A stretch of 64,000 bases of DNA from Chlorokybus atmophyticus. Its lineage: Eukaryota > Plantae > Mesostigma and Chlorokybus algae. Below the pieces are notes generated by a model. The model had not been told where the DNA came from, did no database searches, and worked only from the letters and a program-made list of their open reading frames with translations. This document shows, in pieces, positions 5,130 to 47,091 of this stretch. The translations under genes and the position numbers were made by a program. The DNA is taken from positions 1 through 64,000 of the forward strand of contig RHPI01000977.1 of the NCBI GenBank assembly GCA_009103225.1. The letters are read 5' to 3'. Each line of letters starts with the position of its first letter. The stretch's first letter is position 1.

Positions 5130-5672
5130 CTACCGACTGTGTGAGGGACCGTTGATGCGGCAGTCATCGCACCAGTACTCCCACAAGGGTACTGCGTCCA
5201 GTGGAGGGTCAAGGCAGTAGCAGTGCATGCCTTGATTACAGCCGCCGCATAACATCATTAATGGGTCGTTGTCGGCACTGCCACACTTCTCGCATCGGGT
5301 GCTGCGCAACGGACGCGGGTGCTGGATCTTGGTGAAGCCAGCAATGTAGGGGAGATGACATGGCGCGCGGTTGACCATGTTGTCCTTCATGCGCTCGCCT
5401 CGTTGTCCCAACAGGTCCAGTACCCCTGTGGGGTGCACCTTTAATACCTTGTAGACAGCACGCCCGACGGAGGTATCGAGGGTGTCGTGTGTAGACGCCA
5501 TACGGTAGACGAAGTCTCCTGCCTCGAAGCGGTGCTCCCGCTCCTTGTAGAAACCACTGCGCACACGCTCGTAACGCAGCGCGTCGCGGTGCTGCGCGAT
5601 GCGCAGGTTGTTGAAGGCCATGGGGACTGTGTGTTCGAACAGCGCACTGCGCACTGTTAGATCATACAACAT
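5130..5672 (-). CDS. Integrase C-terminal region with a PHD finger (frameshifted from the main pol ORF)
   Basis: C4-H-C3 pattern CEKC...MMLCGGCNQGMHCYCLDPPLDAVPLWEYWCDDC, preceded by the integrase tail FEAGDFVY. Confidence 0.87.
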   Translation of the reverse strand: MLYDLTVRSALFEHTVPMAFNNLRIAQHRDALRYERVRSGFYKEREHRFEAGDFVYRMASTHDTLDTSVGRAVYKVLKVHPTGVLDLLGQRGERMKDNMVNRAPCHLPYIAGFTKIQHPRPLRSTRCEKCGSADNDPLMMLCGGCNQGMHCYCLDPPLDAVPLWEYWCDDCRINGPSHSR

Positions 5673-8600
5673 ATCGTCGGGGTTTTTCGAGATTGTCCAC
5701 CACTGTGTCGACCTCCTGCTGTGCGCGGAAAGGGAGCAATGGCTGCCTTTCGAACAGTAGATAGTATGGGCTGTACTCTCGCAGGGCTGCCTGCTTGGAC
5801 AGCCGGTAGCCCATTGCTACCCATGGGAGGTGATCATTCCAGGTATTCTTCTCGTAGGCGAGGACGTACTTGCGCAGTGCCTTCTTGATGGTCTGCACGG
5901 TACGCTCGGCGAGGCCGTCGGCCTGCGGGTGGTCGCGTGAGGTGCGACGGTGGTCGATGAAGCATCTGTCGATAAGCTTGTCGAAGGCTCCTCTGAACTC
6001 CGTACCCTGGTCGGTGATGACTTCAGCGCAGCTGCCGAAGCGTCCGAGTACATGGGAGAGGAAAGCCTGGGCTACTCCCTCACTGCTCTTGTCGGGCAGG
6101 GGCACCAGCTCCACCCACTTGGAAGAGAAGTGCTCGATCATGACGAGGATGTAGCGGTTGCCTCGCGCTGAGGGCGCTAGGTCTCCGAGGATGTCCAGTC
6201 CCCAGAGGTAGAACAACCCGGAAATGGGAAGGGGATGCAAGGTGGCATTGCGCGTGTTGAAGCTGGCGCGAACCATGTCACACTGCTGATAGTTGCTGAC
6301 GAACTCCCGCACCTGTCTGTGCACCCCATACCACCAGTACTGGGTCCTGACCAGGCTGACCGTGCGCTTCACACCGAAGTGCCCGAGCTCGGTGTGAAGG
6401 GAGGAGATGATGCCTTCACGTGCAGCTGGTGTGGGGACCTCCTGATCTGCATCTTGTATCCGTCGATACAGCCTGTCGTTGGCCCAGCCGTAACGCTGAG
6501 TGCGTTGCCGGACGCGGTCCTTCTCGCGTGCGCTCATGTCTGGAAATTGTCCAGTCTGAAGCAGTTGGAGGGATGGCTCGTCCAGCCGGATGTCTTGTCG
6601 TGTGTCGGTGGGTGCCAGCTCCTCATCATCCACCTCAGGGTCCGCAGTGATTGCTTCTTCTGATAAAGGATCGGTGGTGGTGATGGCGGGCTCAAGAGCG
6701 GGCATGTCCCCGTCTGCTGCTGCCTCAGCGATCTGAGTCCTGCGTCCTGAGCGTAGCGCAGCAACAGCGAACATGGTGGCCACACCTGAAGGTGCAGCTG
6801 TAGGACCCAACTCATGTCGGGCGCCTGTGGCGTCGTTGGTGCTGAGGTGGGGGTTACGGCTGAGGCCATCCGCATCCTGGTTGGCAAGGCCTGCGCGGTG
6901 TTCTACCTCGAATTCGTACTCCTGGAGCAGCAACGCCCATCGTGCTAACTTTCCTGTTAGGTGCTGGTTGTTCATTAACCACTTGAGGGGTTGATGGTCA
7001 ATGACCAGTTGAAACTGCCGTCCAAACAGGAAGGGTCGGAAGAAGGAGATGGCCCACACTGCGGCGAGACACTCCCCTTCGTAGCTGCTGTAGTTGGCCT
7101 CAGCACTGTTGTTGCTGCGGCTGGCGTATGACACTACGCGCTCCTTCTTGTAGTTGTCGTGCTGTACGAGCACGGCCCCCATGCCGAGCTTGCTCCAGTC
7201 TGTGTGCAGGATGAACAATCTGGTGTAGTCAGGGCGTTGCAGAATGGGAGCTGTGGTGAGGCGGAGCTTCAGCTCCTGAAAGGCCTCCTGTTGTGCCTCC
7301 TTCCACAAGAACTCGGTGTCCTTCTTCAGCAGTTCGTTGAGAGGCCTTGCGATCTTGGCAAAGTCCTTGACAAACCGGCGGTAATAGTTGGCAAGGCCGA
7401 GGAAGGCCCGCAGCCGCGTGAGGTCTGTGGGGGCAGGAATAGCCACCAGTGCCTCCACTTTGGCCTGCTGTACGTGCACACCATGGGGCACAATCATGTG
7501 TCCTAGGTAGGGTACCTTGTGGGTGAAGAAGGTGCACTTGTCAGGGTGCACCGTCATGCCAACTTCCTTCAGCCTCTGTAGCACCTCTTCGATATGCTGG
7601 AGATGCTCCTCATTGCTGTGACTGAAGATGAGGATGTCGTCAATGTAGCAGCGTGCGAAGTCCAACCCCTTGAGGGCTTTGTCCATGACGCGCTGGAACT
7701 TGGCCGGAGCGTTCTTCAGTCCGAAGGGCATAACCTTCCACTGGTACAGCTGCCGGTTTCCCCAGAAGGAAGTCTTGTGCTTGTCCTCCTCCTTGATGGC
7801 GATCTGGTTGTACCCTTGGCGCATATCCAGGATACTAAAGACCGTGCAGTCTCCTACATCGTCAAAGATGCCTTCTGCGGTAGGCATTGGATACCTGTCC
7901 TGCTTGGTCTTGTTGTTGAGGGGGCGATAGTCGCCACACATGCGCCGGTCTGTCCAGTTGCCCGCTGAATCTTTCTTCAGGGGCATGACGGTCGCGGCCG
8001 CAAAGTCCAATGTGGACTCCTCGATCAGGCCTGCATCTAGCAGCGCCTTGCACCTCTGTTCCACCAAGTCTTCTTCTAGCTTGGAGAGGCGGTACTGTCT
8101 TCTGAATACCGGTTCGATGTCCACTAGTTCAATGTCCATCTGGTATGCTGAGCAGATGCCCAGCTCCTTCACACTGAAACTGAATTGGCTCCTCCACTTG
8201 TTGAGGAGAGCCTCGAGTTGCTCTCGAGTCTGGCCTGTGGCCAGCGGGCCAATGGCGTGGGACCACGAGGTAGCGTTGGCGACCACTGGAATGTCTTCCA
8301 CAGCGACTGCTGCCTGCTCCTCCATGTGGGCGGTCTCGAGGGCGGTGTGTGCTGCTTTGGTCTCTGAAAAGCGAGCAATCCACCCCCCAGCCAGGTGTTC
8401 GAGCTCCAGGAAGGACACATGGCGGTTCTGGAGAGCAAAGCACATTTCCAAGTACCACACCATGCTGTTTTGATCCATGGCGCGCCCTAACAACTGACAC
8501 TGTTGACTGGTTGTCAGCGTGGAGCCTGTGATGCTGCCTGGGAAGAATCCCATAGCACGCTCGCGCTCACGGGCATTGGGTTCTTCCAGCTGTCCAGTGT

Positions 8601-8829
8601 TTGAGTCTAACACCATGCCGTCGCCTCCATTGCGGAACGCGTAGGAGCCTGGATACAAGCGTGGGTAGTGCGCGGCGCGGCTGACCAGGCTGGTTGCACT
8701 GGTAGAAGTGGTGGCAGTCAAGGCGTGTGACCGGTCGCGCTGTGCGTCCAGGGTCCAGGATGTCATCGACGACGAGATTTCGTGGCCAATCGCTGTATAG
8801 GTATTCTGCCAGAAACAGGTCCTCCACAA
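5662..8829 (-). CDS. pol: MTase C-terminus, reverse transcriptase, RNase H, integrase
   Basis: ERERAMGF and LLGRAMD (MTase IX/X-like); RT motifs MPFGLKNAP and CYIDDILIFS; RNase H motifs LHTDWS, YEGECLA and DADGLSR; integrase motifs H-H-C and DQGTEF. Confidence 0.95.
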   Translation of the reverse strand: MWRTCFWQNTYTAIGHEISSSMTSWTLDAQRDRSHALTATTSTSATSLVSRAAHYPRLYPGSYAFRNGGDGMVLDSNTGQLEEPNARERERAMGFFPGSITGSTLTTSQQCQLLGRAMDQNSMVWYLEMCFALQNRHVSFLELEHLAGGWIARFSETKAAHTALETAHMEEQAAVAVEDIPVVANATSWSHAIGPLATGQTREQLEALLNKWRSQFSFSVKELGICSAYQMDIELVDIEPVFRRQYRLSKLEEDLVEQRCKALLDAGLIEESTLDFAAATVMPLKKDSAGNWTDRRMCGDYRPLNNKTKQDRYPMPTAEGIFDDVGDCTVFSILDMRQGYNQIAIKEEDKHKTSFWGNRQLYQWKVMPFGLKNAPAKFQRVMDKALKGLDFARCYIDDILIFSHSNEEHLQHIEEVLQRLKEVGMTVHPDKCTFFTHKVPYLGHMIVPHGVHVQQAKVEALVAIPAPTDLTRLRAFLGLANYYRRFVKDFAKIARPLNELLKKDTEFLWKEAQQEAFQELKLRLTTAPILQRPDYTRLFILHTDWSKLGMGAVLVQHDNYKKERVVSYASRSNNSAEANYSSYEGECLAAVWAISFFRPFLFGRQFQLVIDHQPLKWLMNNQHLTGKLARWALLLQEYEFEVEHRAGLANQDADGLSRNPHLSTNDATGARHELGPTAAPSGVATMFAVAALRSGRRTQIAEAAADGDMPALEPAITTTDPLSEEAITADPEVDDEELAPTDTRQDIRLDEPSLQLLQTGQFPDMSAREKDRVRQRTQRYGWANDRLYRRIQDADQEVPTPAAREGIISSLHTELGHFGVKRTVSLVRTQYWWYGVHRQVREFVSNYQQCDMVRASFNTRNATLHPLPISGLFYLWGLDILGDLAPSARGNRYILVMIEHFSSKWVELVPLPDKSSEGVAQAFLSHVLGRFGSCAEVITDQGTEFRGAFDKLIDRCFIDHRRTSRDHPQADGLAERTVQTIKKALRKYVLAYEKNTWNDHLPWVAMGYRLSKQAALREYSPYYLLFERQPLLPFRAQQEVDTVVDNLEKPRRYVV

Positions 8830-28672: not shown

Positions 28673-30266
28673 NAAGTCCAGCAGATGCATTCATGCGTCC
28701 ATTGCAGCGCCCCCCGCTCTCGGACCGGGCGCTTTTAGAAGAGAGCTTCTAGAAGAGAGCAACATCGGGCTCCCCACCAACAACGACGTCCCGAATCACC
28801 TGTGCAGTGACTGTTTTAGACGCGTGCACATTGCGTGTGAATGCGCACAGTCACGCCTACACACGCCTAGCACAGCCGCACGCATATATGTGTGGTAGCG
28901 CACGTGCACACCGTAAGTTGGTGTGTATACAACATACGCGCACACGCGCATGCGTAAACATGCACACGCATGCGCGCGTGCATTCAAGCATTGTGGGGTG
29001 GACCTCATGCACAAGTATACACGTGCTCACATGTAGCCACCTATGACTTTTGGAATTCATAACCTGGCATCGCTGGCTCATAGGCCGCGATGGTCAGTTC
29101 GGCCTATGAGGCAGCCTCATAGGCTGCACTAGATAGTGCGGTATATAGCCCAACGCGTGCGTGCGTGCCAAAGAGAATGCTTGTGCGGACAGTGCACATG
29201 CCTGTGTGGACAGTGCGCATGCCTGTGTGGACAGTGCCGTCTATGAGCCCAATTGTAAGCTTGTGCGTGCACATTCACACACAAGCATTGTCCCATCAAT
29301 CCACACACGCACACGCGTATGCACGCAAGCGCTGAGGTGCATGCGCTTACTCATGCGCATGCGCACACACACTCATCGCACCTTAAAAGATGGTGGAGAG
29401 TGCAGACAGCTGGGGCAAGGTAGTGCCTATATATGCAAAGCCGTGCACTACCAACTTGTTCTTTGTTCTCTTCCCAAGCGGTTGCTGACTGCCAGCTTGG
29501 GAGACAGTCCGCGTACCTACGCGTAAGCGTAAGCGCATGCACGTGTGCGCATTCACATGCACGTGTTGTATGTGTTGCAATGGTTGAGTACTTCAATTTG
29601 ACACACACACACACACACGTGCGCACGCGCACGCACATACACACTGAGCGGGACTGCAGCAACCGCCTCACAGGCTGCACTGAATAGTGCCTATGAGGCG
29701 GGCTCATAGACTGCAATGTTCATAGCAACCGCCTCATAGGCTGCACTGAACAGCCTGTGAGCCCGCCTCATATGCACTATTCAGTGCAGCCTGTGTGAGG
29801 CGGTTGCTAACAGTCTCATGGGCTGCACTGGATAGTGCCGTCTATGAGCTTATTTTCAGTTGTGTGTATGTGTGTGCATGCATTCGCGACGAAAACACAT
29901 CGATACTTGCACACGCAAATGCGCACGCACACTCCTCCTTCCCCTCCCCGTTCCCCTTACCCGTCCACTTACCTTGATGTTTAGCAGGTGCACCTAAGTG
30001 CAGCGCCCCCCGTTCCCATGCCTTACGAGAATAAGCAGCATCAGGTTTCCCCAACAGCGCCCCGGATTACCACTGCGCTGCTGCTCTTGTGCGGCGTCAA
30101 GAGCAGGCCCTCCGCGGCAACTAGCAACGCTTGTGTTGGGGACATGCGCATCTGTACGTGAAGAAATAGAGTTGCCAAGAGTCTCCGGGGGGGGGGGGNC
30201 CGTTCACATGCATAGCGTATATACAAAACTCCCTCATAGACTGAACTGTCCAATTCGGTCTATGAC
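27842..30266. repeat. Array of ~34-bp palindromes CTCATAGGCYGCACT-N4-AGTGCRGCCTATGAG in a degenerate ~600-bp periodic repeat
   Basis: Groups start at 27842, 28430, 29077, ~29666 and 30233. The first copy has perfect 15-bp arms. Confidence 0.8.
28627..28672. repeat. Poly-C run next to an N
   Basis: Homopolymer directly followed by N at 28673, so its length is unreliable. Confidence 0.8.
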
Positions 30267-31093
30267 GCAGTGGACAGCAAGCGGGTGCAACAAGTGCGTG
30301 CATGTGTGTACCGTGGACACATGACATGACATGACGTGTATGCGTGCGTTCTGAAGAGCACATGCATGCGCTTGCACATGCGCGTGCGTATGCAACCACG
30401 TATCCTCCCCCTCGCCCTTCCCTTTCCCATCTGCTCACCTGCTGTTCATCATTTGCATGGGCTCACTGCTGGCTGGTAGCATGCATCCTGCAGAAGCATC
30501 TGGCAAAGTGCAAAGGCGTTGTGAAGTCTGAGCAAACAACATTCATACCTGCTTGCAGAAGCCAGGGTTGGGTCGGGCCTAAGAATGCCGCAGCCGCATT
30601 GTAACCAATGCATCTGATCCACATTATCACGTCACTTGAAGCCAAAGCTACAACATCATCAGCTGGATTGCTGACACCAAAATGGTATCACAGGCTCACG
30701 AGCAAAAGCCAAGTGCTCCGTCCTCATCATGTACGCTAAGATCACGGAAGCACTGCAAGCGACAGTGTTACCGTACATAATGCTGGGCTTGGCAGGTGTA
30801 CATAACAAGACACACCTTTTGAAAACTCCCGCAAGGCAGTGCACGAGGCATCCGCCCTTTTCAACGCCCTGCGCAACGAAGTTGACTGCCAGCGGCTTCG
30901 GGCAGCCGCAACAGCCAATTTGCATTTGACATGTCCCAAAGCGGGATGCGCAAAAGGTGCATAGGCTCTGCATGCGGTTCACATCACAACTTCAGTCAGC
31001 TGCTTAAGTTAGAAAGCAAAAGCAGGCATGCACGCATAATCAGGCGGGCAAGTAAAGAGGTAAGCAGTAGCAAGCCAGCATGCAAGCTGACGA

Positions 31094-31161
31094 AGTACGA
31101 GCGCGCAATGCGATTGCGCGCTCGTACTAATCTAGCTGGGTTGAGTCAACCCAGCTAGATT
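31094..31161. other. Two abutting perfect 16-bp-stem hairpins
   Basis: AGTACGAGCGCGCAAT-gcg-ATTGCGCGCTCGTACT, then AATCTAGCTGGGTTGA-g-TCAACCCAGCTAGATT. Confidence 0.9.
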
Positions 31162-33300
31162 GAATGCGCGCTCATGGCCAGCGATTTATGCGCAAGCAAA
31201 AGAAGCAAGTGAAAGCACGCAATCAACCTGATCGTGCCTGCGATTTACCGTGAACAGCAGCCTTCTATACTACCGTGGCTGCTGCTGGAAACTGTGTTGT
31301 TATGCAAAAACGCAGCAGCAACAGGCGCAAATACAAACACAACCACAAATACACAAATACAAAAGAATACATAACAGTGCATCAACGGCCAGCAGCACCG
31401 GCAGCAAGAGCCGCTTCCTCCAGCACTAGCTGCTGAACCAGCTGTTGTACCAATGCTAATGCTAGAACTACAAACTGAACAGCAAGCAACAAACAGTGCA
31501 TAAAGTTTGAATGCAATGAAGCTTCAACACCACCGTAAGTAAGCACTTGGTGGGCATACCCTCAGCACCGCCGCCTCCGGCGCCGCCTCCAGCTCCAGGT
31601 GCTTGCCGCTAACATCCAAGAACGACGCAAGCAGTGCCTCAGTGCGAGCCATAGTGACTAGGGTTTCGTTAGTGGATAAGTACAGTTCATACTTACCGCT
31701 CTGCTGACGTGTATCAGATCGCAGCATACTGTCGCTGCAAAGCATCGCAGATTACACTGTACGACGCGCGGTACGTATCATGTCTGGTTCTCGGAGACCG
31801 CTAGTGTACGAACCAGGCTCTAAGTCGTACACAGCGTACAGTATTTCTCCGCTGGTTCGCAAGCTGCGGGGGGCGCGACCAGCCCAAGTCCTGCCGGTTG
31901 TACCGCGTACGGTACCAGTGCTGCACTGGTGCATAAGCCGCGGAGCACGCGACCAGCCCTGGTCCGGTCAAACGGACCAGGCTGTCCGGCTCCGGGGCCG
32001 GACCACTGGTGGTCCGGTCACGCCGGATCAGTCGCGGCACCGGTACGCTACAACGTACCAGACGTGGTCTGCGGGCTGCGTACGACTGGTCCGCGTAAAA
32101 ATCCCTGTGTGTATTCATGATAATCAGAAACAACGCAAGGCTCGCTGACAGTCAGAAAGCCAGAGGCCTTCCCTATGGCAGATTGCAGGAAATGGTCGGT
32201 CGAGATGGATGCTCGCGTCGTACGTAGGCCATGAGTAACGTGTGAGCATGGGTGAACTGGGGTGATCGACAGCCGTGGTGTCTGTAAGTTTATCGTTGAT
32301 TGTCGGCGGTGTTGGTAAGGTGAACAGCGTAAGTTAACGCCCGTTTACGAGCGGTGTTGCATCAACGATCGACTGTGTGCGTTGTTGGTTGTCGTTTGCA
32401 GTCGCCGTTGCTCACGGCAAAGTATATCACTGTCGTCGATGCGGAGGCGCCGGTGTACCCTGATATCAGCTTATGCCAACGGTGGTGGTATTCGAATTTG
32501 CAAGTGCAGATGAGGCGGGGTGTTTGCAGTGTTGGCTGGGCTGTGTGTTGTGGGCGGCGGCGTCGATGGCGGATGATGCTAGTCTAGCGTCGCTTTTGGA
32601 GGAGCAACGACAGAAGCTCGAGTTGATAGAGGCGGCGAGGAAGGGTCGCAATACAAGCCAGCGTGACTANATGACTATGCCAGGCGCCGCCGTGAGGAAG
32701 ATAAGAATTACATTCAGCAGCTGAAGGAAGAGTGTGGGCTGGTGAAGTCTCGGATGAACGCAACTGGCGTGTTTCTGCATGCATTGACATGTGGGAAGAC
32801 TTGGAGATGGCAAGGAGATAACCTTGTTTTGGTTCAGGTGCGTGTGGAGGGTGCAGCGTATCACACCGATTGACGTCAAAGGACCATAAGTGGTCCGTAC
32901 TCTCGAACCGGGATTTTCCCCTGCTAAGTGAATTCCGTGGACCATGTCTGGTTGGACTGTCATTGACAGTCCGACCATGCATGGTCCAAAACTCACGTGA
33001 ACGGTCCCATGTTTTTTTGGGGTCGCACCATGTCTGGTCCGGCCTGTTTACGGTCGCATCAGGACCAGGTACGAGCCAGTCAGCGGACCAGGGACTTACC
33101 AAAAACATTTAGTTTAACAATCATTACTGGTCCGGCCAGCGGACCATTGACCGCAATATTTATTCATAAGCATTAGATGTAATACAAATGACGGAAAAGT
33201 GCTCTATCTTGAGCCGGCAGCACCGGCCACGCCCGACCCGCGGGGCCGCAGGCTGCAGCGCAGGCCGCGGCGTCTTAGACGTGATTAGTGAAGAACGCAT

Positions 33301-33372
33301 GCATCCACCGAGAGTCGAACCCAAGACCTTTGGAATACAAACACGACACCCTAACCACTAAGTTACATGTGC
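33301..33372 (-). pseudogene. Degenerate tRNA-like sequence (Thr-TGT-like pseudogene or SINE head)
   Basis: 72 nt with an A-box-like TAACTTAGTGG, a B-box GGTTCGACTC and loop TTTGTAT. Acceptor and anticodon stems pair poorly. Confidence 0.55.
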
Positions 33373-34972
33373 ACGTACCGGTAGGGGCGTTGCAGTACTT
33401 GCATAATAGACTGCACCGACGGCCGCTTGGCGACTGTCGGCGGCGGAAATTGCACAGGAAGTCGGCGTTGTGAATTGACAGGCCCATAGGCAGTGCATGC
33501 GCTATCAATGTGCATAGGCTGTACCAGTACTAATCCACGGTATCACATTATTTTACGTCATTATTGACACAGGCAGCCGCAATTCGGCGGCTGCCAAGGT
33601 GTCTAAACTATAATGCTTTGTTGGGGGCTGCTCATGAGTATGTAACCTTGTTTGGGGTTGTCAATATCCTGCTTGCGTGCGCATACACACACTTACATGT
33701 GTACATATGTATATATATACGTATCAACATACGTATATATATACATATATACGTTTACATGATATAAATACGGGACGACGAGCATTGCGGCACCAATGTA
33801 GGTATCTACTAGCTGATTGGACACAATGTTTGGTCGGGGCTGTCAATCATTCTGCGGTCTCATAAAAGGCTATTTTAATAAGTGACATGACTTATGTATA
33901 CTTCTTATACATATGTTTACATGAGACATACCTTGTACACGGCTCACCCCATAATACGGCTAATATAGCCATTTGAAATGCTTAAAAATTTTGCCCCATC
34001 CATTTGTGCACACGCTAACGTTTATATATACGTATTATATGATATATTTTTAATCTTCATATATACGTAGATACTTAGATGAACGCATAGAACATAATAA
34101 TGGTGCATGTTCACAGATTGTTGAAAATACACGTACGGTACTATGAAGTATGTTAATTGCATAGACAGCCCCTTACAGCTGAATTGACAGCCGGCTGGCT
34201 GTCAATCAGCCGCCGACCATTTGCGGCTATCCACTTGCGGCTGTCCACGGGTGTATAGCCGACAGTCGGTGCGGCTTGTCAACTAACACGTTAAGTGCAC
34301 TTGTGCAATCAGGTATTTAGGCAATCTATTGTACCTTACGTAGGTTGGTGCTACCTACTCATGATAGCGGCAGGGCCGCGGTCACTGGTGCGTGCCGCAA
34401 CGGACATGGTGCGGCGCGGACCGTGCGGCACCATGTACGGTGCGTGCTACAGTGTAGTAGGGCCACAGGACTGCGGGACCGCACCTGGTCCGCGTTCAAG
34501 GGCCAGGATACATACTGGTCCGTGCCGCACCATGGATGGTGCGGCACGGACCATGCGTGGTGCGCGTCGCCGCGCCAGCCATTGACGGGCCGCGGGGCCC
34601 CGAATGGAACAGGAACGGTCCGTCCCCCGCGGACCAGGTAGTCCCAGCCCGCGGGGTACGGATCATGCATGGTCCGGGGGGTCCGTGAAAGGACCATGCA
34701 TGGTCCTTCAACGTCAAGCCGTGTGTATGTTCATGCGTGTGTATTGTGTGTATCGTGCATTGTCTCCACTTGTGACTGCGGTTTGATTTGGCAGCTGATA
34801 TGGATGAGAAGTGTTTTGTGCTCTACATACTGACTCTAATGTATTGTGTGAGCAGGATACCTTGCCATCTCCTGGTGGCGCACCTCTTGGACTATGTGCG
34901 CAGGTGAGGTGCGGTTGCATGCTGCATGCTGCGTAGCACTGTAGTTGGCTGCAAACCCGTGCTCAATGGTGC

Positions 34973-36183
34973 ATGTTGCAGGAGAATGATGTTGAATTGG
35001 CTCTGTCGTCGTCTGACGAGGAGGAAGATCAGGAGAACATCCATCAAGTACTTTCGCAGCGTAAGAAGCAGAAGCAGCATCATGCGCCTCATCAGCAGCA
35101 AGTACCACCAGCCTCTGCACTGCACCAGACACCGCATGGCAATGTGCGCCATGATCAGAATGGCAACCGTGTCGTGTTGGGACCGGCCATGTCTCGGTTG
35201 AACACAGCGAGAGGCGTGCCTAAAACGCCCAAGACACCACTTGGCACCTTGCCAGGTGGGCGCTTAGCTTAGCCTGATTTGCTTTGCTAGGCGGTACCCT
35301 GAGAGACCATGAATCATGTGTAGTAGATGAGACGATGTTGTATACCTATTGCCTAAATGTGGATTTGAGAACTAGTTTCCACAGCTTGATGCATGTGTTG
35401 TGTGCAGACCAGGTTCGTCGTGCCAGCGTGCATGCGGATGATGCGTACAGACAGACCCGTGTGTTCAGCCAGCTGGAGGTATAGCGGGAGTGGGGGGCAT
35501 GCAAACAAGTAAACATGCTGTGTAGTTGATCCTTCAATGCACAGTCATCTTGTCAGCAGCTTGTGTTAGGTTTGATGTATTGGCGTTCGATGTAGAAAAT
35601 GGGGATGTGGTCTGTAGATTTGCCAGGCATCCATACTCAAGTCACCATGTGGAATGGCAGAGTGGTATGAACAGGTGTCATTATAGTCTACATCACTATG
35701 TATGTAAGCATGTTTTCAACAGTAGTCGGCAGATTGCGAAATAGGGGACTACAGCCATATGAAAATATATGCTCTGGGCGCCCAACCACTGTGTCTACGC
35801 AGTCAGCGACTATACAAGTTCAGAGTTTGAGGGCGGAGATGGCTTCAGTCAAGCAGGGGAGAGATCGTGTACAACGCGACTTGGATGCGGCGCTGGAGAG
35901 GCTGCGTGTCATGGAATCAAGCGGCAGCTCCAACACCAACACTGCCTTGCAGAATGCCTTGCAGGAGTTGCTGCAGTTGCGCACACAATGCGAGGTTGGT
36001 GTTTGCCTAATCCTGTTTGTATGGTGTATATTTGGGTTTGACTTACCTCTGGCTTGCATGGTGTAGGACTTGCGAGATCAGCTCACACAGAATGTATGTC
36101 AAGATGCTTAACGCCGCGCAGAGTCCGCACGGGCTGTTGGGGAACTGGAAGAGGAGTTGGATGCAATGACCCTGCATGCCGAG
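34973..36183 (+). pseudogene. Putative 5' exons (acidic and coiled-coil) of the Academ-like transposase gene
   Basis: Coding-like blocks 34973-35255, ~35750-35995 and 36067-36183 end at GT donors. The GTGAGT donor at 36184 and the CAG acceptor at 36264 join in phase to 36265. There is an in-frame TAA at 36109. Confidence 0.5.
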
Positions 36184-36264
36184 GTGAGTGGGTGCACAAC
36201 CTTGCATGCAATAATATATTGACTATCAGAGGCCTCTATGTCCTGAAGTCGAACATATCACCAG

Positions 36265-39200
36265 GTGTTGGAGACCAGGGTGGGCGAGGAAGTGGACGCT
36301 TATAACGCTGAGAGGAGACACCGGCTGCAGGTGGAGTGCAATCTGTCAGGATACCGTGGCAAGTTAGTGGAGCTGGAGGACGTGATCGCTGGTCTACGTG
36401 AGACTGTGCGCACAAACAGGGCGTGCCATCCATCGCAGCACGATGCACGTGTGGCGGACGAGGTGCGCCAGCTCTATGAGGACGATGTGCAGCGAGCAGC
36501 CAATGAGGACTGTCACGAACCTGTCGCATGTGCGGTGAGAGATGTTGCATCCCAGTTGCTGCAGAGGGATGCCGTTGTATTCCTGACTGCAGTAGCAGTC
36601 AAGTACAATATTGCACCTGCGCGTGTACTGCTGCGTGCTGTGAACCAGCGCTTACCGGGAGCGGGTGTGGTAGTGACCGGCGCCAGGCAACAGGGTACAC
36701 TTATGATTGCTGCTTGGGCCGATCCTTTGGCATGCCTGTTGCGCCATGGGATGAGGGTTACTGAGGTGCCGGCCAGCACACAGCCAACTCGTACGGGTAC
36801 CAGCGCGGTTGATGGCGACCAACTGCCTGCTGCGGTACTTCGTCACCTGAACAGGGTTATGGAGGCGGAGAGGCAACGGCATGTCGAGCGCAACAGACAG
36901 GACCCTGATCTGCGCTGCGTGAATTGGCAAAAGGAGTGGGAGAAATGCGGACCTGTAGCGCGACAGTTGATGGGCACACTGACTGGCTACAGTCAGATGG
37001 AGCGATTGCCATCTCCTGGTCCCAAACGGGCTCGTGCTTTAACAATCCTGCGCAATAAGACCGTGTTCCTGATGCACTGTGCATTGTATGCAAGGAGCAA
37101 GTTTGCATACTCTCCATTGCATTTGGCGGTCACGGACGAGGTGGACACACATTCTGAAGGGAACAAGTTAATCAGGACCCTCAACCGCCTGGGTGTGACA
37201 GTAAGCCGAAGCCACATCGACCGACACATACACACCAGGGCGCTTCACAATCTGAACAGCATCGCTCGATTGCAGCCCCGACCTGGTATACATGTGCTGG
37301 CATCGATTGATAATCTAGACATAAAGGCAGGCCACCAGGCACGCTACAAAGGCAGGAAAGCAGGAGACATCCATGCCACTTCAACTCAGCTTACCTCGAC
37401 AGCCGCTCGGATGCTTCCAGAACAACTGACTCTGCAGGTGAGTTGTCAGACAATGGTGATCAGGGAGACCCATTACTGCGAGTACAGGTCAGTCAAACCC
37501 GCATCTTGTGGGCAATTCATGTACTCATTGTTGGTGTTGTTGCAGCCATCGAGGAATCGCACGCTGGCAGAGTCACTGGTGGCTGAGCCGTGCGTCAACA
37601 ATATGACTCCTCCTGCGCCCATGCAGAGAGCACCAGTTGTTGTGCGGAGCGATCCAATCTTGAACTTAATGCCCGAGGAGGTTGCGGCACTCGAGAGTTT
37701 CCAAAAAACGTTACACAATGCCGTGTTGATGCGCATGCAAGAGCCGGACCAAACATGTTTGCCAACACTTAAGGAGGATTGGGCACGGTGGCTGCAACTG
37801 GCCACAGGCAGAAGCACTGAAGTTGCCAACGACATTGAATACCTGCCTGTGTTGCCTTTCTGCCCTGACAATATAGAGAACCTCAAGTTTGCGCTCTTGC
37901 AACTGCGCGCCAAGGTTGGCATCACGGATTCAACAAGCAAGATCTGTGTTACTGGGGACCAGAAGACGTTTGCCCTGATGCAAGCACTAAAAAGGGCAGA
38001 GCCGGGCTACTGGGACTGGGTGGTGCCTTTCCCTGGCGATTTCCATGTTCTGATGAACATGCAGCCCGTCATTATGAAGATGGCCTGGGACGCTGGTCTC
38101 GATGCTATGTCCTTGGAAGCCGGTTTTTCTGCAGCCACGGCACGCAATCACTTAACAGACGGCTCTCATTGGAAGAAGATACACAATTTTCTGTGTAAAG
38201 TCTTGGAGGCACTGTACAGACATATGTTCAAGTTGCGGCAGCAGGCAGAAACCGCAGAAATCAAGAACTTGTGCAGAGCTGACCTGGAGGAGAACGTGAT
38301 CAATGCCTCAAACTCTGCTTCCTTCTTCCGCGAATGGTGCGAGGGTCAGTGCAAGACCGATCATACCTGGCAGTTCTGGTGGAACTTCGTGAGCCGTGAT
38401 ATGCTGCATTACTTTGGGCTATTTTGTGGTGTTCGCCAGAAGATCTGGCATCTCCGACTGGCCAGCTGGAAGGGTCTGAGCCCGCTTCCATTCGCCTGGG
38501 ATCGCTACCATTATCAGAAAGTCATGACGCTGCATCTTGCAGACCTGCAGAGCATGCCGCGCTCTTTGCTGGATATGCTAGCCGAAGGTGGCTTTGCAGT
38601 CAGTCTAACAGGATCGGCTGGCAGACTGGTTGCTCTTGATGAAGCCCACGAGTGCCAGGTCAACAGAGATATGAAGATGTCACTGTGCAGGCCCACCACC
38701 GAGCAGCTCCGTCAGAAGTCATTGTACTTGGGGGAGCGCAGTCAAGCACACAAGCAACTAGAGCGTCAGCTACTGCTTGACAACAACCTGGTCAACAACG
38801 AGCTGGATGATGACGCCGACGACGACCACGAGAGGGTAATGCGGACACTGGCTACCGACGCCGCCAGGTGTGGCAGCGATCTAATGCATCTTGCTGAGCT
38901 GCTGGAGAATATACAAGCCTTGGCAAGGCCACACGCGCTGCACTTGACGCATCTTACCACCGGTGTACCAGCGGCGGCTGCTGCTTCAGCAGATCTTGCG
39001 CGACACTACCAGGTTGGTGTTGAGGCCATGAAGTCCTTTGTGGAGGTTGACGTCTGCCGCGAGGCACCTGCGTGCAAAGTCAGTCGCAGATTCAACTTGA
39101 AAACAATGGCACCTGCTAAGAAGCGCATGAGCAAACAGGCCACCGTGATCAAGCAGTACCGTCAAGAGATGTTGGTGGCCAAGCGCCTGGCTGCCAATGG

Positions 39201-40938
39201 TGCTAGTCAGGAGACCGTCACAGCAAGATACTGCGAGCATCCATGGGCGCTGTTTGAGGAGCTCACCGGCAAGATGCGGTCTGGCGACAAGGCCAAGTTT
39301 ATGGCGGAGGTAGCTCCTCTCGACAACACATGCTGGAGCCGCATGTCCCCGCAGGGCGTGGAGTGCATCATCCTGGAAGGCATGTTCCTGATTAATCAAG
39401 AATGCCACATGCTGCAAGGCACCATCAAGGACTATATCCAACACCTGATGCGCATCTGCGTGCTCAGCCGGCTCGCCAATCAGACCGTGCGCAGCGTGCA
39501 AGTTGTGTTTGACACTCCACGACTCCAAACGGGGGTCAAGTCTTCACTGCAACGCGCACGTGACGGTGCGGCGCAATCCTCTGGTGGTCGTCTAACTCTG
39601 GACACTGAGCTGCCGAGATTGTGGCGGGATCTGCTAAGAGATCGTAGCTTGAAGCGATCTCTGTGTGAACTGATAACATAGCACATGCCCAACATGATTG
39701 CGGAGTACCTGCACCCCGACCAAGAGGTTGTATTCGCTGGCGGGTCAGATCTAGACGAAGTTGGAGACCTTGCGCGTGTCGTGGCACGCGATTCGGACAG
39801 CCCTGCACGCGTATATTTTGTGAACGACTATGTTTGTAACCATGGAGAAGCTGACTCTCGCATCTGGGTGCATGCGCACAAATGCCCCTACAACAACATC
39901 CTCATATACTCACCTGATACCGATGTGACCATGATTGGCCTGGCGATCACCGACGGGTGGGATGCAGTGTTGAAGGACGTCACAGTACAGGTGGCACAGC
40001 ACTCCAGTGGCTCCACTCGACCACCCTTCCTGCACTTGTCTACACTGCAACAACAAGTCAACAGCATGCACCAGGTGCAGAGCATCGCCACCGGGTTGCG
40101 TGGCTGGTGGCTTCTTCTGGTGTATGCAGCAACTGGTTGCGACTACACCTCATTCATTGGCGGCATCTCGAAACAGTTTATCTGGCGCACGGTCCTGGCA
40201 CAGCATGCAATATTCATCACCGGCAATGTTAGTGTAGTGGAACATGAGATGTGTTTCGCTATACTGCGCCTCATTGGGTGCTCTTACTTCGAGAAGTACA
40301 GGTCCAGCTTCGACAGCGGCACTCCTGCATCTCTGTACTTCGAGTTGCACGGGCCTGAATCAACCACCAGCGATAAGGGACGATTGGCAGACTGGTTAGA
40401 GGCAATCCACAAAACAGTGTGGAAGAAGATTGCCACGCCACGAGATACCATGCCCACAGTCGATGCACTATGGCTGCATGCACTTCGCTCGGTGTATGCA
40501 GTGCAGATGTGGATGCAGAGCTGCAATGGTGACATGCACATGCCTGACTTGTCTGCTTATGGTTTCACTGAGGTCGATGGGCTATGGACTGCTGTCCAAG
40601 ATCTGCCAGAAAACATGGTGGAGGCGAAAGCTAGGAGGCAATTGCTGATGAAGGGTTGTGGATGCAAGACTGGACGATGTATCAGCAAGAGATGCAAGTG
40701 TCGCAAGGCAGGACAAGCATGCACCGACAGCTGTTTGTGTTTGGGATGTGACAACCACGGCAATCACGTGGACGAGGACGCTAGTGCAGCTCCTTGTTGC
40801 CACACAACACCCCCCCCGCCCGTGGTCAACCCAACAGCGGAACAGTCAACACAGGCAATGGACAACGATGATCCCGATTCTGTCAACTCAGACAGTGATG
40901 AGGAAGACCTCACCATGATGGATATGGACGACGTCTAG
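36265..40938 (+). mobile_element. AcademX-like DNA transposase (DDE-like core + XPG/FEN1-like nuclease + Cys8 finger), with one premature stop
   Basis: The 1138-aa and 417-aa ORFs share a frame and are separated by a single TAG at 39679. Core motifs SIDNLD, GDQKT, FPGDFH and LDEAHE; XPG-like HGEADSR, SPDTDV and TGCDYTSF; Cys8 CGCKTGRCISKRCKCRKAGQACTDSCLC. A likely in-frame intron spans 37438-37545. Confidence 0.8.
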
Positions 40939-41325
40939 GGCGGCCTGCTACTCTCGCAGAAGGCGCCGCGAGCAGCAAGTTCTACCATAGCCACCACGCC
41001 CCACTGCACCTCACCCGACCCGCCCAACCACCGGCAACCCAATCTACTGCACCTGTCAACGCCGCCGCCACCGGCAGCATCCTCATCCGCAACCTCCTCC
41101 GCAACCGCCGCCGCCTCCGCCGGATGCCCAAACCGCAGACACACAACCACTTCAACAGAAGGTGCCGCCTCCGCCGCCGCCACCGGCCGCTTGCTCCCCC
41201 GCCTCTGCCTACACCCCCGCCCCCGCCAGCCTCGAGCAGAGATCTGTGCTGGCTGGTATGTAGCAAGCGCATGTTTTTAGGGTTTGCAACGCGTGTTTTT
41301 AGGGTAGTGCAGCTCAGCAACATGT

Positions 41326-43137
41326 GTGTTACATTGCAAGGCGGCGGAGTTGGCGGAGTGCAGTGGCACCAACATGGAGACGGCGGGCACGGTCAAGAAG
41401 GTCATGGTTTGTGACGTGTGCCATTCCTATGTCGTCAACAACGGTCAGCGTTCGCGCCTTCAGAAACATCAGGCTCAGTGCAAGGCTTACCAGGAGCGCT
41501 TTGGATACACTGCCGCATGCTGGCATCACCACGCTGCAGGTCATCACATCCTGCACTGCCGAGTGAAGCTTAGGTGTGCGCAACCAGAGTTTTTTAATAT
41601 GCAGTGCGCATGCCATCAGTGCGAAAGCTCTCTGTTTGAATGGCACGGCCTACCCATGCGATACATGCCTTACGTCCGCCCCACCACCATGATTGAAGGG
41701 ATGCAATGCCGCCTGCTGGCGGTGAGTGGCACAGATGGCACTGATGATACTGCACGCATTTGTGCCAACACTAATACTGTATATACAACTTGTGCGCCAG
41801 GGCCAGCGCGTGCGCTGCGGACGCGGTGACGCGCAGACCGTTGTCATTCTGCCAGAGATAACGGCTGTTGCATCAGATTTCCTCGAGGTTGGTGTTTCAA
41901 CGTGAACGTGCATCGCACCTAGTGCATTACACAACAGCATTGTAATTGTGGACAACCAGACTGAACGAGAAGGAACCGATGCCGCCAGCGTGCTGCGCCA
42001 GCGTTGCGCGCGCGGGGGTGATGCATTGGAGGGCCTCGATGTACTGGTGTACTGGCCGATGGACGAGACTTGGTATACCGGAGTCGTCTACATTTACAAC
42101 CCACGCAATGGTGAGTTATGCATTGTCAAGAGCATTCACACGTGACACCGGCCATGGACTCAACATAGCGCACTGCAATTGCAGGGCGCCACAGTGTGCG
42201 CTTTGTTGACGGCGACAAGCAGCATATGAAAATCGACAAGCACAACATGGTGGTTGTGTTCTGGCACCAAGGAGGTCAGTGTTGCCACCGCGTTGGTGGT
42301 CAGCGCGTACCCACTCACCGCAAGATCCCTCCGCCTCTGCCGTGTCTCCCGCTGTGGTCGTCATCAGCGCCATTGCTGATGACACACACTCCTGTCAGAA
42401 TGGATGGCACACCGCACCGTCCCAAGGTCCTTGACCTGTGCTGCGGCGGGGGAGGTGCTGGGATGGGGTTGTACCGAGCAGGGTTCGACGTTACCGGCGT
42501 TGACATCAATCCACAGCCCGAGTACCCGTTCCCCTTCATACAAGCTGATGCCCTGGTAGTCGACCTGGCGCCATACGACCTGATTTGGGCTAGCCCCCCT
42601 TGCCAGGCATATGCCCGATGCATACCAGATTCACGACGTCACCAGCATTCTACACGGTGGAAGCACAGCACACTGCTGCCATCGCTGCGATTGCGCCTTC
42701 ATGAGTCAGGGAAGAACTACATCCTGGAGAACATACCAGATGCTGCATGTCACATGCAGCACAACATGGTGCTGTGCGGCACCATGTTTGGACTGCCAAT
42801 CTTCCGGCACAGGCTTTTTGAGACACACCCCAAGATGGTAGCCGACCTGGTGTGCGACCATACGTCCAAGAGTCTAGGTCCACTGTCGGGTCATGTGTCC
42901 AGCACTGCCAGCCGCACACTGAACAGCACTACCCAGCAGATGTACCCCGTGTATGGCTCCGCTGCATCGCGCGGTACCATATCCGGCTGGCAGCAAGCAT
43001 TAGGCATTGACTGGATTGATGCTGATGCCACACTCGTCGAATGCATTCCGCCTGCATACTCTGAGTATATTGGGCGGTGCATGTTGCAGGCAATGGGATA
43101 CACATTGAACAGCGGCCCCATATCATGGGGCCGCTGA
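41326..43137 (+). CDS. Spliced Tudor domain - C5 cytosine DNA methyltransferase fusion (prokaryote/phage-type catalytic domain)
   Basis: Phase-consistent GT-AG introns at 41722-41800, 41888-41959 and 42111-42184. The Tudor VLVYWPMDETWYTGVVYIYNPRN|GRHSVRFVDGD is complete only after splicing. MTase motifs I (DLCCGGGG), IV (SPPCQ), VI (ENI), VIII (RHRLF) and X (ECIPPAYSEYIG) are intact. The start codon is uncertain and may be in 41040-41255. Confidence 0.85.
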
Positions 43138-43469
43138 GTATCAATCCGTGCATGCATATTTGTGTTAGTTTACAAGTCTATTTGTACACTGGTGCACATT
43201 GATTCTCAATGCACATTTCCTGGTCAATATATGGTTGCAACCTTGCATGACCACAACATTGCATTCGCGCTCACACATCAACGTCAGTTTTCCATTGCCG
43301 CTCACACACAGCACCAGACATCCTATGCGCACGCCCATGCCGGTCTAACTACACAACGTCACCGTCCAGTTGATGCGGAATAGGGGACATGCATACACTG
43401 CGCGCAGTCACCTAGCGAGCAGACACACGTGTGATGTACAAGTAGCTTGTTGCGCACAGTGCACACTGC

Positions 43470-44398
43470 CTAAGACACCACAGCTGCACTGGCATCATCA
43501 CTGCCCTCCTCGCTGGTGTCACACCCTGCCTGCGATGGAGTCTTTTTGTCGTATGCACCAAACCACTGAGCCTCATACTCGGACTGGTCATAGTCAGTGT
43601 CGTTGTCCATGTCTCCGAACACCTGGGTGAGGTCGTCGTGAGCAAGCATCCATTCCACAGGCTTGAGTACATGTGACCCAGACACACAATACCATGATCA
43701 ACATCACCCATTTAGAAGCGTCTACCTGTATCATACCCTACCTGTCAAGCACCCTGATCCATATGCCTGGCAGACTGAATCACCAGTGTAGCCGCAGCTT
43801 GCACATCGCATGCGACTCGCAACCCAGGCCACGCGCACGAGACAGATCACAACCCAGCTGATCGGCATTCCAGTGCATATGCATACATTGATAAGGGGCA
43901 GAATACAACTGAGTCTCGTGACACAACACACACCCAATCAATTTATACACGCACCACATTAATTACAGTTGCAACACACATACGTGCGCACATACCAGGG
44001 TCTGCAGGCACGACAGGATCCCAACCTCCACCGACAACTGCAGGGGGCGGGTGGGGCAAGCCAGGATTATCTGATTGGGCATCGTCGCCACCCTGCAGTG
44101 GATGCATGCTCCACTGACCGACCTCAAACGGGCTCCAATCAGTGTCATGCCACTGCTCAAGCCAATGCCGTCGCCTTCCAGGTTCCACATCACAATCAGT
44201 GGCGATCACCCAACGTGCCAGCACCACTCCACCCACCACATGCTCCAACACCAGCAGATCACTACTCAAACGCATTGGCCTGCCGCCTGCTCGTCGAACC
44301 CTATGCAAGCTGTACCTAAACCCAAACCCACCCAAAAGCTCCACGTGCAGCTCCTTGACACCATCGCCAGACTGCACTCCTGACCCAGCAACCTGCAA
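43470..44398 (-). CDS. Fragments of an unknown spliced gene convergent on the MTase gene
   Basis: A 151-aa Trp-rich block is bounded by a CAG acceptor (~44393) and a GTATGT donor (~43993); an acidic block lies at 43470-43685. No recognisable family. Confidence 0.3.
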
Positions 44399-47091
44399 CG
44401 GCCAGCCTAGCGAAACCTACACAAGACCGGGGGACAATATCACATGCCACGCATCCGCCTATACAGAGACTAAAGCAGCACGTGGCTGCACAACGACAAA
44501 TCATGCACATTACTTAACGCTGACTCACCTGCTCGTATGCAGACTGGTAGAATGTGCTACTCCGATGTATGTGAGGGAGTGCCCTGCTGTCAGCAATAGT
44601 AACTGCCAAGGGGTTGTCGCCGCCCCCGCCGTCGACATCCATCACACCCACCCACCCAACGCAATCGCCGCCCACCAGCACCCCGCCGCCCACCAGCACC
44701 ACCCGCCAAGCAATGCCCCCATTCACGACCGATATATCAACGCCAAACAGAAGTCAGCACGCTGATATCCACCAGACGGCGGCAACATTCACATCCGACC
44801 AACAGCGTCAACCGCCGTTTACTTAACAGAACCACACGCACCTTCCACCATGCAACAGCGTTAAACATCGCATGAACATGCGTGGACAACAGCGTTGTGT
44901 CGACCACTCAACACGCTTAGCCGACGCTGATCGATCAGCGCAGACACTAGACAATGCACCGTTAATCACCCGATCAACTACAACCAGGTCAGCGGTGTCA
45001 ATAAACGTTGCAACACCGCCATCCCACGCGTTTCAGCAGACCAACACCAACAGCAGCCGCGCGCACAGCGCTGCCAGGCTTGGCCTAAGCTTTGCCCGGC
45101 GAGAGGCCTCTGGCTTTCTGACTGCTGATGACCTGCGTGCAAAAGAAGATACGCATATGTTGCCGTGTATGCGGCGTGGTTCACAGAGTGCCATGCACCA
45201 TAAGAATTGTCCGGCCAGCCGGACAGCTAATGCCAACCAGCCGCACCACTAAATATGCAAACTCGATAAGCAAGGTTTGCGAATGGTGGCAGCACCTTAG
45301 AAGCTCTCCTAGGTTGCAAGCTACCAAGGGCTCTGAAAACGTTTTTCTGCTGGAGGGATGGCGGTCGCATCAAATTGGAAACAACCATCGAGATGGCAGA
45401 TGGCTCATGTGCAATTTATTTTTAATACTTACAACGTTGCACGACTTGTTATCAAACAACCTATCATCTGTACCGAAAGGATAATAACATGCTTGATATA
45501 TCCATATTGCGGCACCTTACCATTGATGTGCATATGATTACATCCCGGATGTAACTTGGCAACATCTGCATTATAAAAAAGTTTTAGAAACATGTGATTT
45601 GGAATTGTTATTCCGGAGATATAAAGCTGAATTTGATACTCTCATGTAATCATTCTCGTGTTTATGCCAAGTGCAAAAGGCGTGCATCACATCGCCCGCT
45701 ATTACATGCAGGATTGGTATAAAGCAAGCATGTAAGCAACGTTACACTGTATGATGCATGTCTTCATGTCTTCATTATACACGACGATGTGTAAGATGTG
45801 TTGAACTAAGGGATGGAAACATTCGGGATCGATTGCGAAATACTACCTACCTACCGGAAGGTCGAACAGCGAATTGATAAGCCTCAATGCTACCAGGTGT
45901 TGTGACTCATAACTTCTGAGCCGCACATACGTAGGCGATGCTTGCGTCTGGCACGGGGAGCAGCACCCGCGACTATATATAAGTTTGGTCTTGCAGTGGG
46001 AGGCGCGGGCCTCCCTTGCAGTAGTGCTAGCGAGCGAGTTACGCTGCACACTACTCGGCATGCAGTGCAGATACGGGCCGTATCTTACAGGCAGCGGCAC
46101 CCTAAGTTAGGTGCCTAATTAAGCCCACCGCATGCATACGGGTCGACCAGCCAGAACCAAACCGCGTCGAACCACCTGACATGGCTAAGTACCACCCTGC
46201 GTGGCGTGGCCTGGTTGCTTGGCAAGAGGCGGTGGCGGCGGCGATAGCGGCACGTCAAGAGGCTGCTGTTGTGGAGGCGCTTGCTGTGCTGGACGTTATT
46301 TGAACAGAAGGTAGTTGTCCGTATGCTGTGCTGACCGTGGGCGGTGTTGCCTTTAAAGCTGGTCCCGCTTTGGCACGTCTAAGCAGGTATGAGGCAGGCG
46401 TTCAGGCTTTCAACATCAGCATCAATCTGTGACATTCATGTCCAACTTGTGCGCAGTCTTGTACAGTTCGTGGTGTTGACAAACACCGTGTAGTGCCAGT
46501 AGCTTTGCCAAAGCAAACAATTGCAACAACAACAACCTGCATGCATGCACTGCACGGTTACATATCAGCACGCATGCACGATGCGGTGGCTTTTCTATAA
46601 ACACAGTTGTTGTGTGGCATACAGTAAAAAACCAAGGCAACGCGTTCATCCTTTACATGAGCGTGCGCAAAGCACAAGTTGCACCCCATGCAAGCCGTGA
46701 TTATGTGGCACTTCGCACTGCACATGCACTGTGCATGCTCAGCGCTTGGCGTAAAGTTCTCTTTCCTCTCAGCCAGAGGCTCTTTGCATCACGGAGAGGC
46801 TGAAGCAAAGGCAGCAACAGTGGGGACGTAAGCGGAGGGCTGCAGCGTGACGGCGCAGCATTCAGCTGCGTGGAAAGGCAGCACGCCGCAGGGTTTGATT
46901 CCTCAGCTGCAGGTATGCTTCCAAAGCAGTGCTGCTTGAAGTTGTGCTGCGCACATCGTGCCAGCTCAAACACTCACTGCCAGGCTGTGTTTGGACAGAT
47001 CACCCTCGCAGTCTCCATTTGACCCAATGCCGTGCTGAGTTGCTGCTGGCGGTGGCAGGTTGGTTGCGGGGGCGTACTGTGAAGTGGAGTC

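Follow-up and report, generated by a model that had tools for sequence, protein, structure and literature searches.

The window analysed here (a stretch of 64,000 nucleotides (nt) from the early-branching streptophyte alga Chlorokybus atmophyticus, assembly GCA_009103225.1, contig RHPI01000977.1, positions 1 to 64,000 of the forward strand) contains a DNA transposon of 12,976 bp located at 32149-45124, within which two genes lie on the same strand. The first one encodes a transposase, whereas the second one is predicted to encode a protein that joins a Tudor domain to a compact C5 cytosine methyltransferase (MTase). An earlier note, made from the sequence alone, had drawn attention to the region 41326-43137, which was read here in all frames and for which a spliced gene model was built by script from the window sequence. 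The element, bounded by terminal inverted repeats (TIRs) and target-site duplications (TSDs), displays the following features, where ORF denotes an open reading frame and X1 and X2 two sequencing runs used for comparison:

32145-32148, no strand: left TSD, CTGA, the same 4 nt being found beside both TIR ends
32149-32169, + strand: left TIR, 21 nt, perfect complement of 45104-45124
32881-34706, no strand: left arm with seven 16-nt palindromes of the GGACCATGCATGGTCC type, in two clusters (32881-33040 and 34527-34706)
36265-39681 and 39685-40938, + strand: the two long ORFs of the transposase (1138 and 417 aa)
37894-38262, + strand: DUF6589 (PF20231) core (Pfam E=2e-10, over the cut-off)
39679-39681, + strand: in-frame TAG read in the sequence, dividing the transposase in this copy; GAG (Glu) in runs X1 and X2
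40651-40758, + strand: Tesmin/TSO1-type CXC domain near the transposase C-terminus (Pfam TCR E=9.3e-6, over the cut-off)
41374-41721, + strand: exon 1 of the Tudor-MTase gene, residues 1-116, Cys/His-rich N-terminus (first ATG, open frame, GT donor at 41722)
41801-41887, + strand: exon 2, residues 117-145 (frame continuity and GT-AG borders only)
41960-42110, + strand: exon 3, linker plus the N-terminal half of the Tudor domain from about 42014 (sub-threshold Pfam Tudor_KDM3B; structure 7DE9)
42185-43137, + strand: exon 4, rest of the Tudor domain (to about 42270; 7DE9), Pro-rich linker, MTase domain at 42400-43134 (homology, fold and motifs) and stop
43138-45103, no strand: right arm, 2 kb, without recognisable gene
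45104-45124, - strand: right TIR, 21 nt, pairing with the left TIR; a contig of run X2 ends at 45124
45125-45128, no strand: right TSD, CTGA, identical to the left TSD

The borders of the element were identified by a repeat search over 30000-47000, which revealed the inverted pair 32149-32169 / 45104-45124 (21 nt, 100% complementary). At up to 3 mismatches, this 21-mer has two matches in the window, i.e. the pair itself (shuffling expectation 0.00), and each TIR is directly abutted by the sequence CTGA, which constitutes a 4-bp TSD. The interval 32149-45124 is a single cut-and-paste DNA transposon. Because perfect TIRs and the TSD enclose both genes, the Tudor-MTase gene (41374-43137) is cargo of this transposon, so that the proposal of the earlier note that the gene travels with a DNA transposon holds for this copy.

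Two low-depth DNA runs, X1 and X2, available as short contigs, provided the copies for comparison. One X2 contig ends exactly at 45124, and the flank of the window is without depth in X2 while the element, including the MTase gene, is present; this pattern agrees with a true end of the element and with its insertion elsewhere in that organism. At the right end, an X1 contig (44737-45173) passes the TIR tip into the same flank as in the window, with 9 differences, 8 of which are listed inside the element. In this run, the element diverges by 1-3%, while the contigs of the outer flank (45373-45946) match the window exactly; such a pattern might stem from gene conversion among copies, from a larger duplicated block or from an assembly consensus.

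Outside the two genes, the element carries few recognisable features. The GGACCATGCATGGTCC palindrome is present in 7 copies with 0-3 mismatches (0.51 expected), all of them in the left arm upstream of the transposase start, where a role as binding sites for the transposase or as a promoter array is conceivable. The ORFs of the right arm (43412-44765) matched no Pfam family on either strand. Elsewhere in the window, a Ty3/gypsy pol ORF with reverse transcriptase, RNase H and integrase domains is located at 5662-8829 on the - strand.

The earlier note had described the transposase as containing stops; it is indeed interrupted in this copy, but by a single in-frame TAG lying between the two long ORFs. 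The Atlas neighbours of the first ORF are DUF6589 clusters (fungi, molluscs, cnidarians) with predicted structures close to those of ISL3 and MULE DDE transposases. The second ORF carries invariant SPDTD and GCDY acidic motifs, and the predicted structures of its Atlas neighbours resemble XRN/XPG nucleases. When an XPG nuclease was looked for in this second ORF, Pfam gave none, PDB profiles matched the CXC region alone and the AlphaFold2 (AF2) model reached a pLDDT of 44. The CXC domain is present in 4 of 8 homologues, and no Pfam family of Plavaka/KDZ transposases was found on either ORF at E<=1. The transposase is a long, DUF6589-type and DDE-like enzyme with a C-terminal CXC domain, for which Academ-like is a reasonable, provisional label. 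The likeness to AcademX DNA transposons consists of the very long transposase, the TIRs and the 4-bp TSD, the TSD of AcademX being 3-4 bp according to the summary of Kapitonov and Jurka and of Kojima 2020 given in PMC10045372. It may extend to the second part of the transposase, with its SPDTD and GCDY motifs and its XRN/XPG-like Atlas neighbours, although neither Pfam nor PDB profiles gave an XPG domain there. In the literature searched, no Academ element with a methyltransferase was found.

The spliced coding sequence of the second gene comprises 1539 nt in four exons, from the ATG at 41374 to 43137, and encodes 512 aa followed by a stop. Its three introns (41722-41800, 79 nt; 41888-41959, 72 nt; 42111-42184, 74 nt) all have GT..AG borders, and the retention of any one of them brings a premature stop after at most a few dozen codons. 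The proposal of three phase-consistent introns yielding one ORF is thereby borne out, splicing itself being predicted. The ATG, on the same strand, lies 435 bp beyond the stop of the transposase (40938), close to the distance of about 400 bp previously claimed. All three introns are located in the N-terminal/Tudor part, the portion of exon 4 that encodes the MTase being without intron. The suggestion that an acquired MTase had gained introns is refined by this distribution. Two other models were rejected: an intron at 42275-42398 between the Tudor and MTase domains would break the frame, both domains being encoded by one continuous exon, and splicing from a further exon upstream (41124-41255) would not keep the reading frame. 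The CDVC...HQAQC segment corresponds to residues 13-35; the N-terminal region that includes it matched no Pfam family and had no convincing Atlas neighbour, and is kept here as Cys/His-rich, not as a zinc finger. The 14-mer CGAGGTTGGTGTTT is found both at 41884-41897, at the predicted donor of intron 2, and at 35991-36004, at the end of an upstream transposase ORF; it suggests a GTTGGT-type splice donor common to the transposase and Tudor-MTase genes.

Comparison of the spliced Tudor stretch with solved structures retrieved a single chain, 7DE9 (E=1e-7), which aligns over 48 residues without any gap across the exon 3/4 junction, and this colinearity provides independent support for intron 3. 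The structure 7DE9 is that of the Tudor domain of Arabidopsis RDM15 (PDS5C) with an H3K4me1 peptide. In the paper describing RDM15, Trp616, Tyr623 and Tyr641 form the aromatic cage, Asp643 and Asp645 select monomethyl-lysine and Glu647 contacts H3R2. The aligned positions here are W177, Y184, F202, D204 and D206, Glu647 being replaced by Q208, so that 5 of the 6 are kept, in agreement with the assignment to PDS5/MSH6-style Tudor domains made in the earlier note. The likeness to the Tudor domains of Arabidopsis RDM15/PDS5C (and MSH6), which are H3K4me1 readers, therefore includes a gapless alignment, the W, the Y, the second Y (F here) and both Asp. However, these proteins have a Glu where Gln is found here, and their Tudor domain is joined to a cohesin cofactor or a mismatch-repair protein instead of a MTase. 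The Tudor domain is of plant lineage type, RDM15/PDS5C-like, and is predicted to read H3K4me1. This plant-type origin implies that the fusion would have been assembled in, or for, a green-lineage host.

The MTase domain corresponds to residues 268-512 (42400-43134), i.e. 245 aa. Compact C5 MTases match it in thousands (E=1e-45 to 1e-68), an exhaustive HMMER search having retrieved 4304 representatives at E<=1e-3, of which 428 reach E<=1e-30. In an alignment of 19 sequences, all the invariant columns (24/24) are kept, including PPC (C335), EN (E377, N378) and RHR (R403-R405), and the motifs follow the order of C5 MTases: motif I loop CCGGGGAG, PPC, EN, RHR and IPPAY. The AF2 model of the domain (pLDDT 84.5, pTM 0.86) displays a DNMT-like fold. 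Indeed, its top 50 Foldseek matches in PDB are all C5 MTases with a probability of 1.00, among them DNMT1, DNMT2, DNMT3, HaeIII, HhaI, DIM2 and the CP-933R prophage MTase, the identity to the solved DNMTs being 10-23%. Motifs I, IV, VI, VIII and X are thus intact, as previously stated. The segment between motifs VIII and IX, which is the usual site of the target-recognition domain, comprises only about 20 residues. Many close relatives carry the Pfam family DNA_methylase (PF00145), and the family profile matches the prophage MTase and HaeIII as well as DNMT2 and HhaI, the latter two only at E=1e-5 to 1e-3. None of the companion domains of eukaryotic DNMTs (RFTS/BAH, PWWP/ADD, SNF2, chromo, UBA) was found in the Pfam scan. 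In line with the earlier note, which had placed it apart from the eukaryotic families, the catalytic domain appears to lie outside DNMT1, DNMT3, DNMT5, CMT and DRM, the nearest sequences being phage, bacterial and giant-virus-like; this exclusion of eukaryotic DNMTs is based on searches and profiles.

Most relatives of the domain are stand-alone proteins of about 205-235 aa that share 42-47% identity with it. Furthermore, 323 phage genomes, mostly of Mycobacterium, Streptomyces, Arthrobacter and Gordonia phages, encode a full-length match (38-40% identity) annotated as DNA methyltransferase, and hundreds more of the short phage type come from IMG/VR, on phage-sized contigs (about 40-60 kb); the best 80 of these include neither an MBD (methyl-CpG-binding domain) nor a Tudor form. 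The domain therefore belongs, as had been suggested, with the short MTases of actinobacteria and their phages, though its nearest relatives form a giant-virus-like clade. Some prokaryote-type relatives of about 450 aa (P0122, P0123, P0170) consist of two complete compact MTases in tandem.

The nearest relatives (39-52% identity) carry an MBD inserted between motifs VIII and IX. They include P0001, P0121, P0124, P0005, P0012, P0002, P0004, P0172 and P0208 as well as the loci L002:2874-3716 and L003:8803-9858. Their contigs are compact and intron-free and appear to be giant-virus-like by their gene content, which includes a D5-type primase-helicase, a PLOD-like glycosyltransferase and a topoisomerase II. 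The best viral structural match is the C5 methylase of Pithovirus LCPAC201 (35% identity, E=4e-18). Maximum-likelihood analysis of 68 sequences places the MTase of the window as sister to the MBD-insert clade (97/68) within a clade of 17 members (99/85), the rest being of the short prokaryote/phage type; this tree is midpoint-rooted and sets no direction of transfer between virus and alga. The MTase module derives from a phage/bacterial family of about 210 aa and is closest to its giant-virus-like branch. No protein above 52% identity and no relative with a Tudor domain was found in public protein libraries (two word-indexed, one searched exhaustively with HMMER), which evidently did not include paralogues from the alga's own genome, and none of the ten longer relatives (0/10) carries a Tudor domain.

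Compared with the compact actinophage and bacterial MTases (about 210-225 aa), the protein of the window shares full-length homology (38-47%), the motif order and the near absence of a target-recognition domain. However, these enzymes are stand-alone, intronless and without reader, whereas the window protein has inserts in common with the giant-virus-like branch. Indeed, it shares with the MBD-insert MTases and with that of Pithovirus LCPAC201 an insert after motif IV, the CxHxxKSLG and MYPVYG motifs and a GYTL tail. In contrast, the MBD-insert enzymes have their MBD between motifs VIII and IX and no Tudor domain, whereas in the window protein this site is occupied by about 20 residues and a Tudor domain lies at the N-terminus. 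The location of the MBD at the position of the target-recognition domain suggests an enzyme drawn to already methylated CpG. An integrated giant-virus fragment (GEVE) was considered as the source of the locus and rejected in view of the introns, the plant-type Tudor domain, the enclosure by TIRs and the fact that no viral hallmark gene was seen nearby.

Comparison with X1 and X2 also informs on the fate of the two genes. The TAG at 39679 reads GAG in both runs, where the transposase is open at that site. X2 carries a nonsense change in the transposase (CAA->TAA at 39526), beside a second C>T (39525-39526), and, in one X2 contig, exon 2 of the Tudor-MTase gene is frameshifted by a 2-nt insertion at 41805. 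The copies thus decay independently in both genes. Within the MTase gene, 5 differences are synonymous and 5 non-synonymous, with no sign of purifying selection; the non-synonymous ones fall outside the core motifs and, in exon 1, both X1 differences are synonymous. With only ten differences, selection cannot be demonstrated, and domestication is unsupported. The earlier note had seen a hint of selection or domestication in an intact MTase beside a transposase with stops, a hint that finds no support in the GAG of X1 and X2, the 5:5 ratio and the frameshifted contig.

The reading favoured here, which seems to us rather probable, is that of a TIR transposon with a DUF6589 transposase that carries as cargo a Tudor-MTase acting as a histone-guided writer of 5-methylcytosine (5mC). 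The Tudor cage (W177, Y184, F202, D204, D206) would dock on nucleosomes with low-methyl H3K4, most likely H3K4me1, and the MTase, itself hardly sequence-specific, would put 5mC on the neighbouring DNA. Targeting would be supplied by the add-on domain, i.e. the Tudor domain here, as the MBD would in the viral sisters. The benefit to the element is a matter of speculation: it might mark its own copies or the neighbourhoods of its insertions, or mask itself. Such marking might damp the expression of the element and the damage to the host, or tie transposition to replication via hemimethylation. A more far-reaching proposal is that of an autonomous transposon family in this alga encoding a histone-mark-guided 5mC writer, built from a phage/giant-virus core and a plant-type H3K4me1 Tudor domain, that influences how its own copies, or marked regions of host chromatin, are methylated; it is put forward tentatively, with doubt outweighing belief. 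CpG depletion, looked for as a footprint of methylation, was not found, the observed/expected ratio being 0.79 for the element against 0.74-0.81 for its flanks.

Several observations, beside the frameshifted X2 contig and the 5:5 ratio, weigh against the favoured reading. Frame continuity is the sole support for introns 1 and 2 and hence for exons 1 and 2, and the searches of sequencing runs gave two low-depth DNA runs, as short contigs, and no RNA run with the gene. No second copy was found within the window by tblastn or blastn. The Pfam Tudor models remain below their own cut-offs, both for exon 3 alone and for the 63 spliced residues, which gave sub-threshold matches to six Tudor-type families. 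Likewise, the MTase domain scores 12 bits against PF00145 for a cut-off of 22 bits (E=0.14); as its relatives and the family profile do reach this superfamily, the link to PF00145 is transitive. Finally, it is by inference that we name the substrate (DNA or RNA), its sequence context and the histone mark bound by the Tudor domain.

Some of these observations are what would be expected if the Tudor-MTase gene had been captured once and then copied along as an inert passenger without function, the gene being intact because this copy is young. The perfect TIRs and the single transposase stop point to a recent insertion, and the ratio of synonymous to non-synonymous differences, the 2-nt insertion in exon 2 and the lack of any RNA run among the searches go the same way. 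However, every catalytic residue is kept, as are the cage residues, three cleanly bordered introns are retained, and ten differences are too few to exclude selection; such an inert passenger is considered unlikely, while being the most serious of the rivals. That the gene would be no cargo but a cellular multi-copy gene in transposon-rich DNA, brought between the TIRs by nesting or rearrangement, has in its favour that the X1 element is 1-3% diverged beside an identical flank. This is nevertheless judged quite improbable, since a single TIR pair with a matching 4-bp TSD surrounds both genes with no second ends found between them, both genes are 435 bp apart on the same strand, and X2 has the element including the MTase gene but not the flank of the window.

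A further rival concerns the enzyme rather than the gene, which would methylate RNA or tRNA (DNMT2-like) or another substrate, or be dead despite its motifs, and would thus not be a writer of genomic 5mC. DNMT2 tRNA methyltransferases are among the best profile matches in solved structures, the target-recognition domain is almost absent, and for no member of the compact family could a solved structure or a cited assay be found. Nevertheless, the phage relatives are annotated as DNA methyltransferases, the methyl-CpG-binding domain of the sister proteins makes sense only for DNA, and the fusion with a histone reader points to chromatin, so that this explanation is given slightly less credence than that of a host gene and far less than that of an inert passenger. 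The cargo 5mC writer guided by its Tudor domain remains the preferred reading of the locus.

The association of mobile elements with C5 cytosine MTases of their own has precedents among retrotransposons, namely Gypsy-DNMT3 in streptophyte algae and SymbioDIRS-DNMT3 and SymbioLINE-DNMT in dinoflagellates (de Mendoza et al. 2018, PMC5890265), as well as the EpiLTRs, in which a DNMT lies beside a chromodomain reader (bioRxiv 10.64898/2026.05.21.726589). The likeness thus includes, for EpiLTRs, a chromatin reader. However, the DNMTs of these elements are located inside pol or ORF1 and belong to DNMT3/DNMT4-like eukaryotic families, whereas the element described here is a TIR DNA transposon with a separate spliced gene, a Tudor reader and a compact MTase of phage/giant-virus type. 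Fungal KDZ/Plavaka DNA transposons, for their part, reportedly carry TET/JBP genes, as Iyer et al. are said to have described in 2014. In marine viruses, IS607-type viral transposons encode a DNMT according to Bao and Jurka 2013, as cited in PMC5890265. Both the KDZ-TET/JBP and the IS607-DNMT associations resemble the present one in that a DNA transposon carries an accessory DNA-modification enzyme; they differ from it by the transposase family, by the enzyme or the host setting and by having no histone-reader fusion. The microalgal DNMT5b, which has N-terminal Tudor domains (Hoguin et al. 2023, PMC9998398), likewise combines Tudor and C5 MTase in one polypeptide, but it is an ancestral eukaryotic host gene coupled to SNF2 that is neither phage-type nor transposon-borne. 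In the full-text literature searched, no DNA transposon of a cellular eukaryote with a Tudor-fused C5 MTase of phage/giant-virus type was described; methylation and Academ both go unmentioned in the Chlorokybus genome paper, and a recent DNMT survey mentions neither Chlorokybus nor Tudor nor MBD.

Self-encoded cytosine MTases have so far been described for retrotransposons, with DNMT3- or DNMT4-like enzymes, whereas here an enzyme derived from prokaryotes or viruses is combined with a predicted histone reader on a cut-and-paste transposon. The copy of the window, being exactly bounded, provides a reference for the annotation of related copies in the genome. If the enzyme is active, it would reveal a further entry route of 5mC machinery into eukaryotes, from phage to giant virus and then to a transposon or host. 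It would also offer a concrete case of a transposon that manipulates host chromatin and does not only suffer from it, and a MTase core of 245 aa whose targeting would come wholly from an add-on domain, Tudor here and MBD in the viral sisters. Should the more far-reaching proposal prove true, the element would be the first case of a reader-writer of DNA methylation borne by a DNA transposon, and its product a natural minimal targetable MTase.

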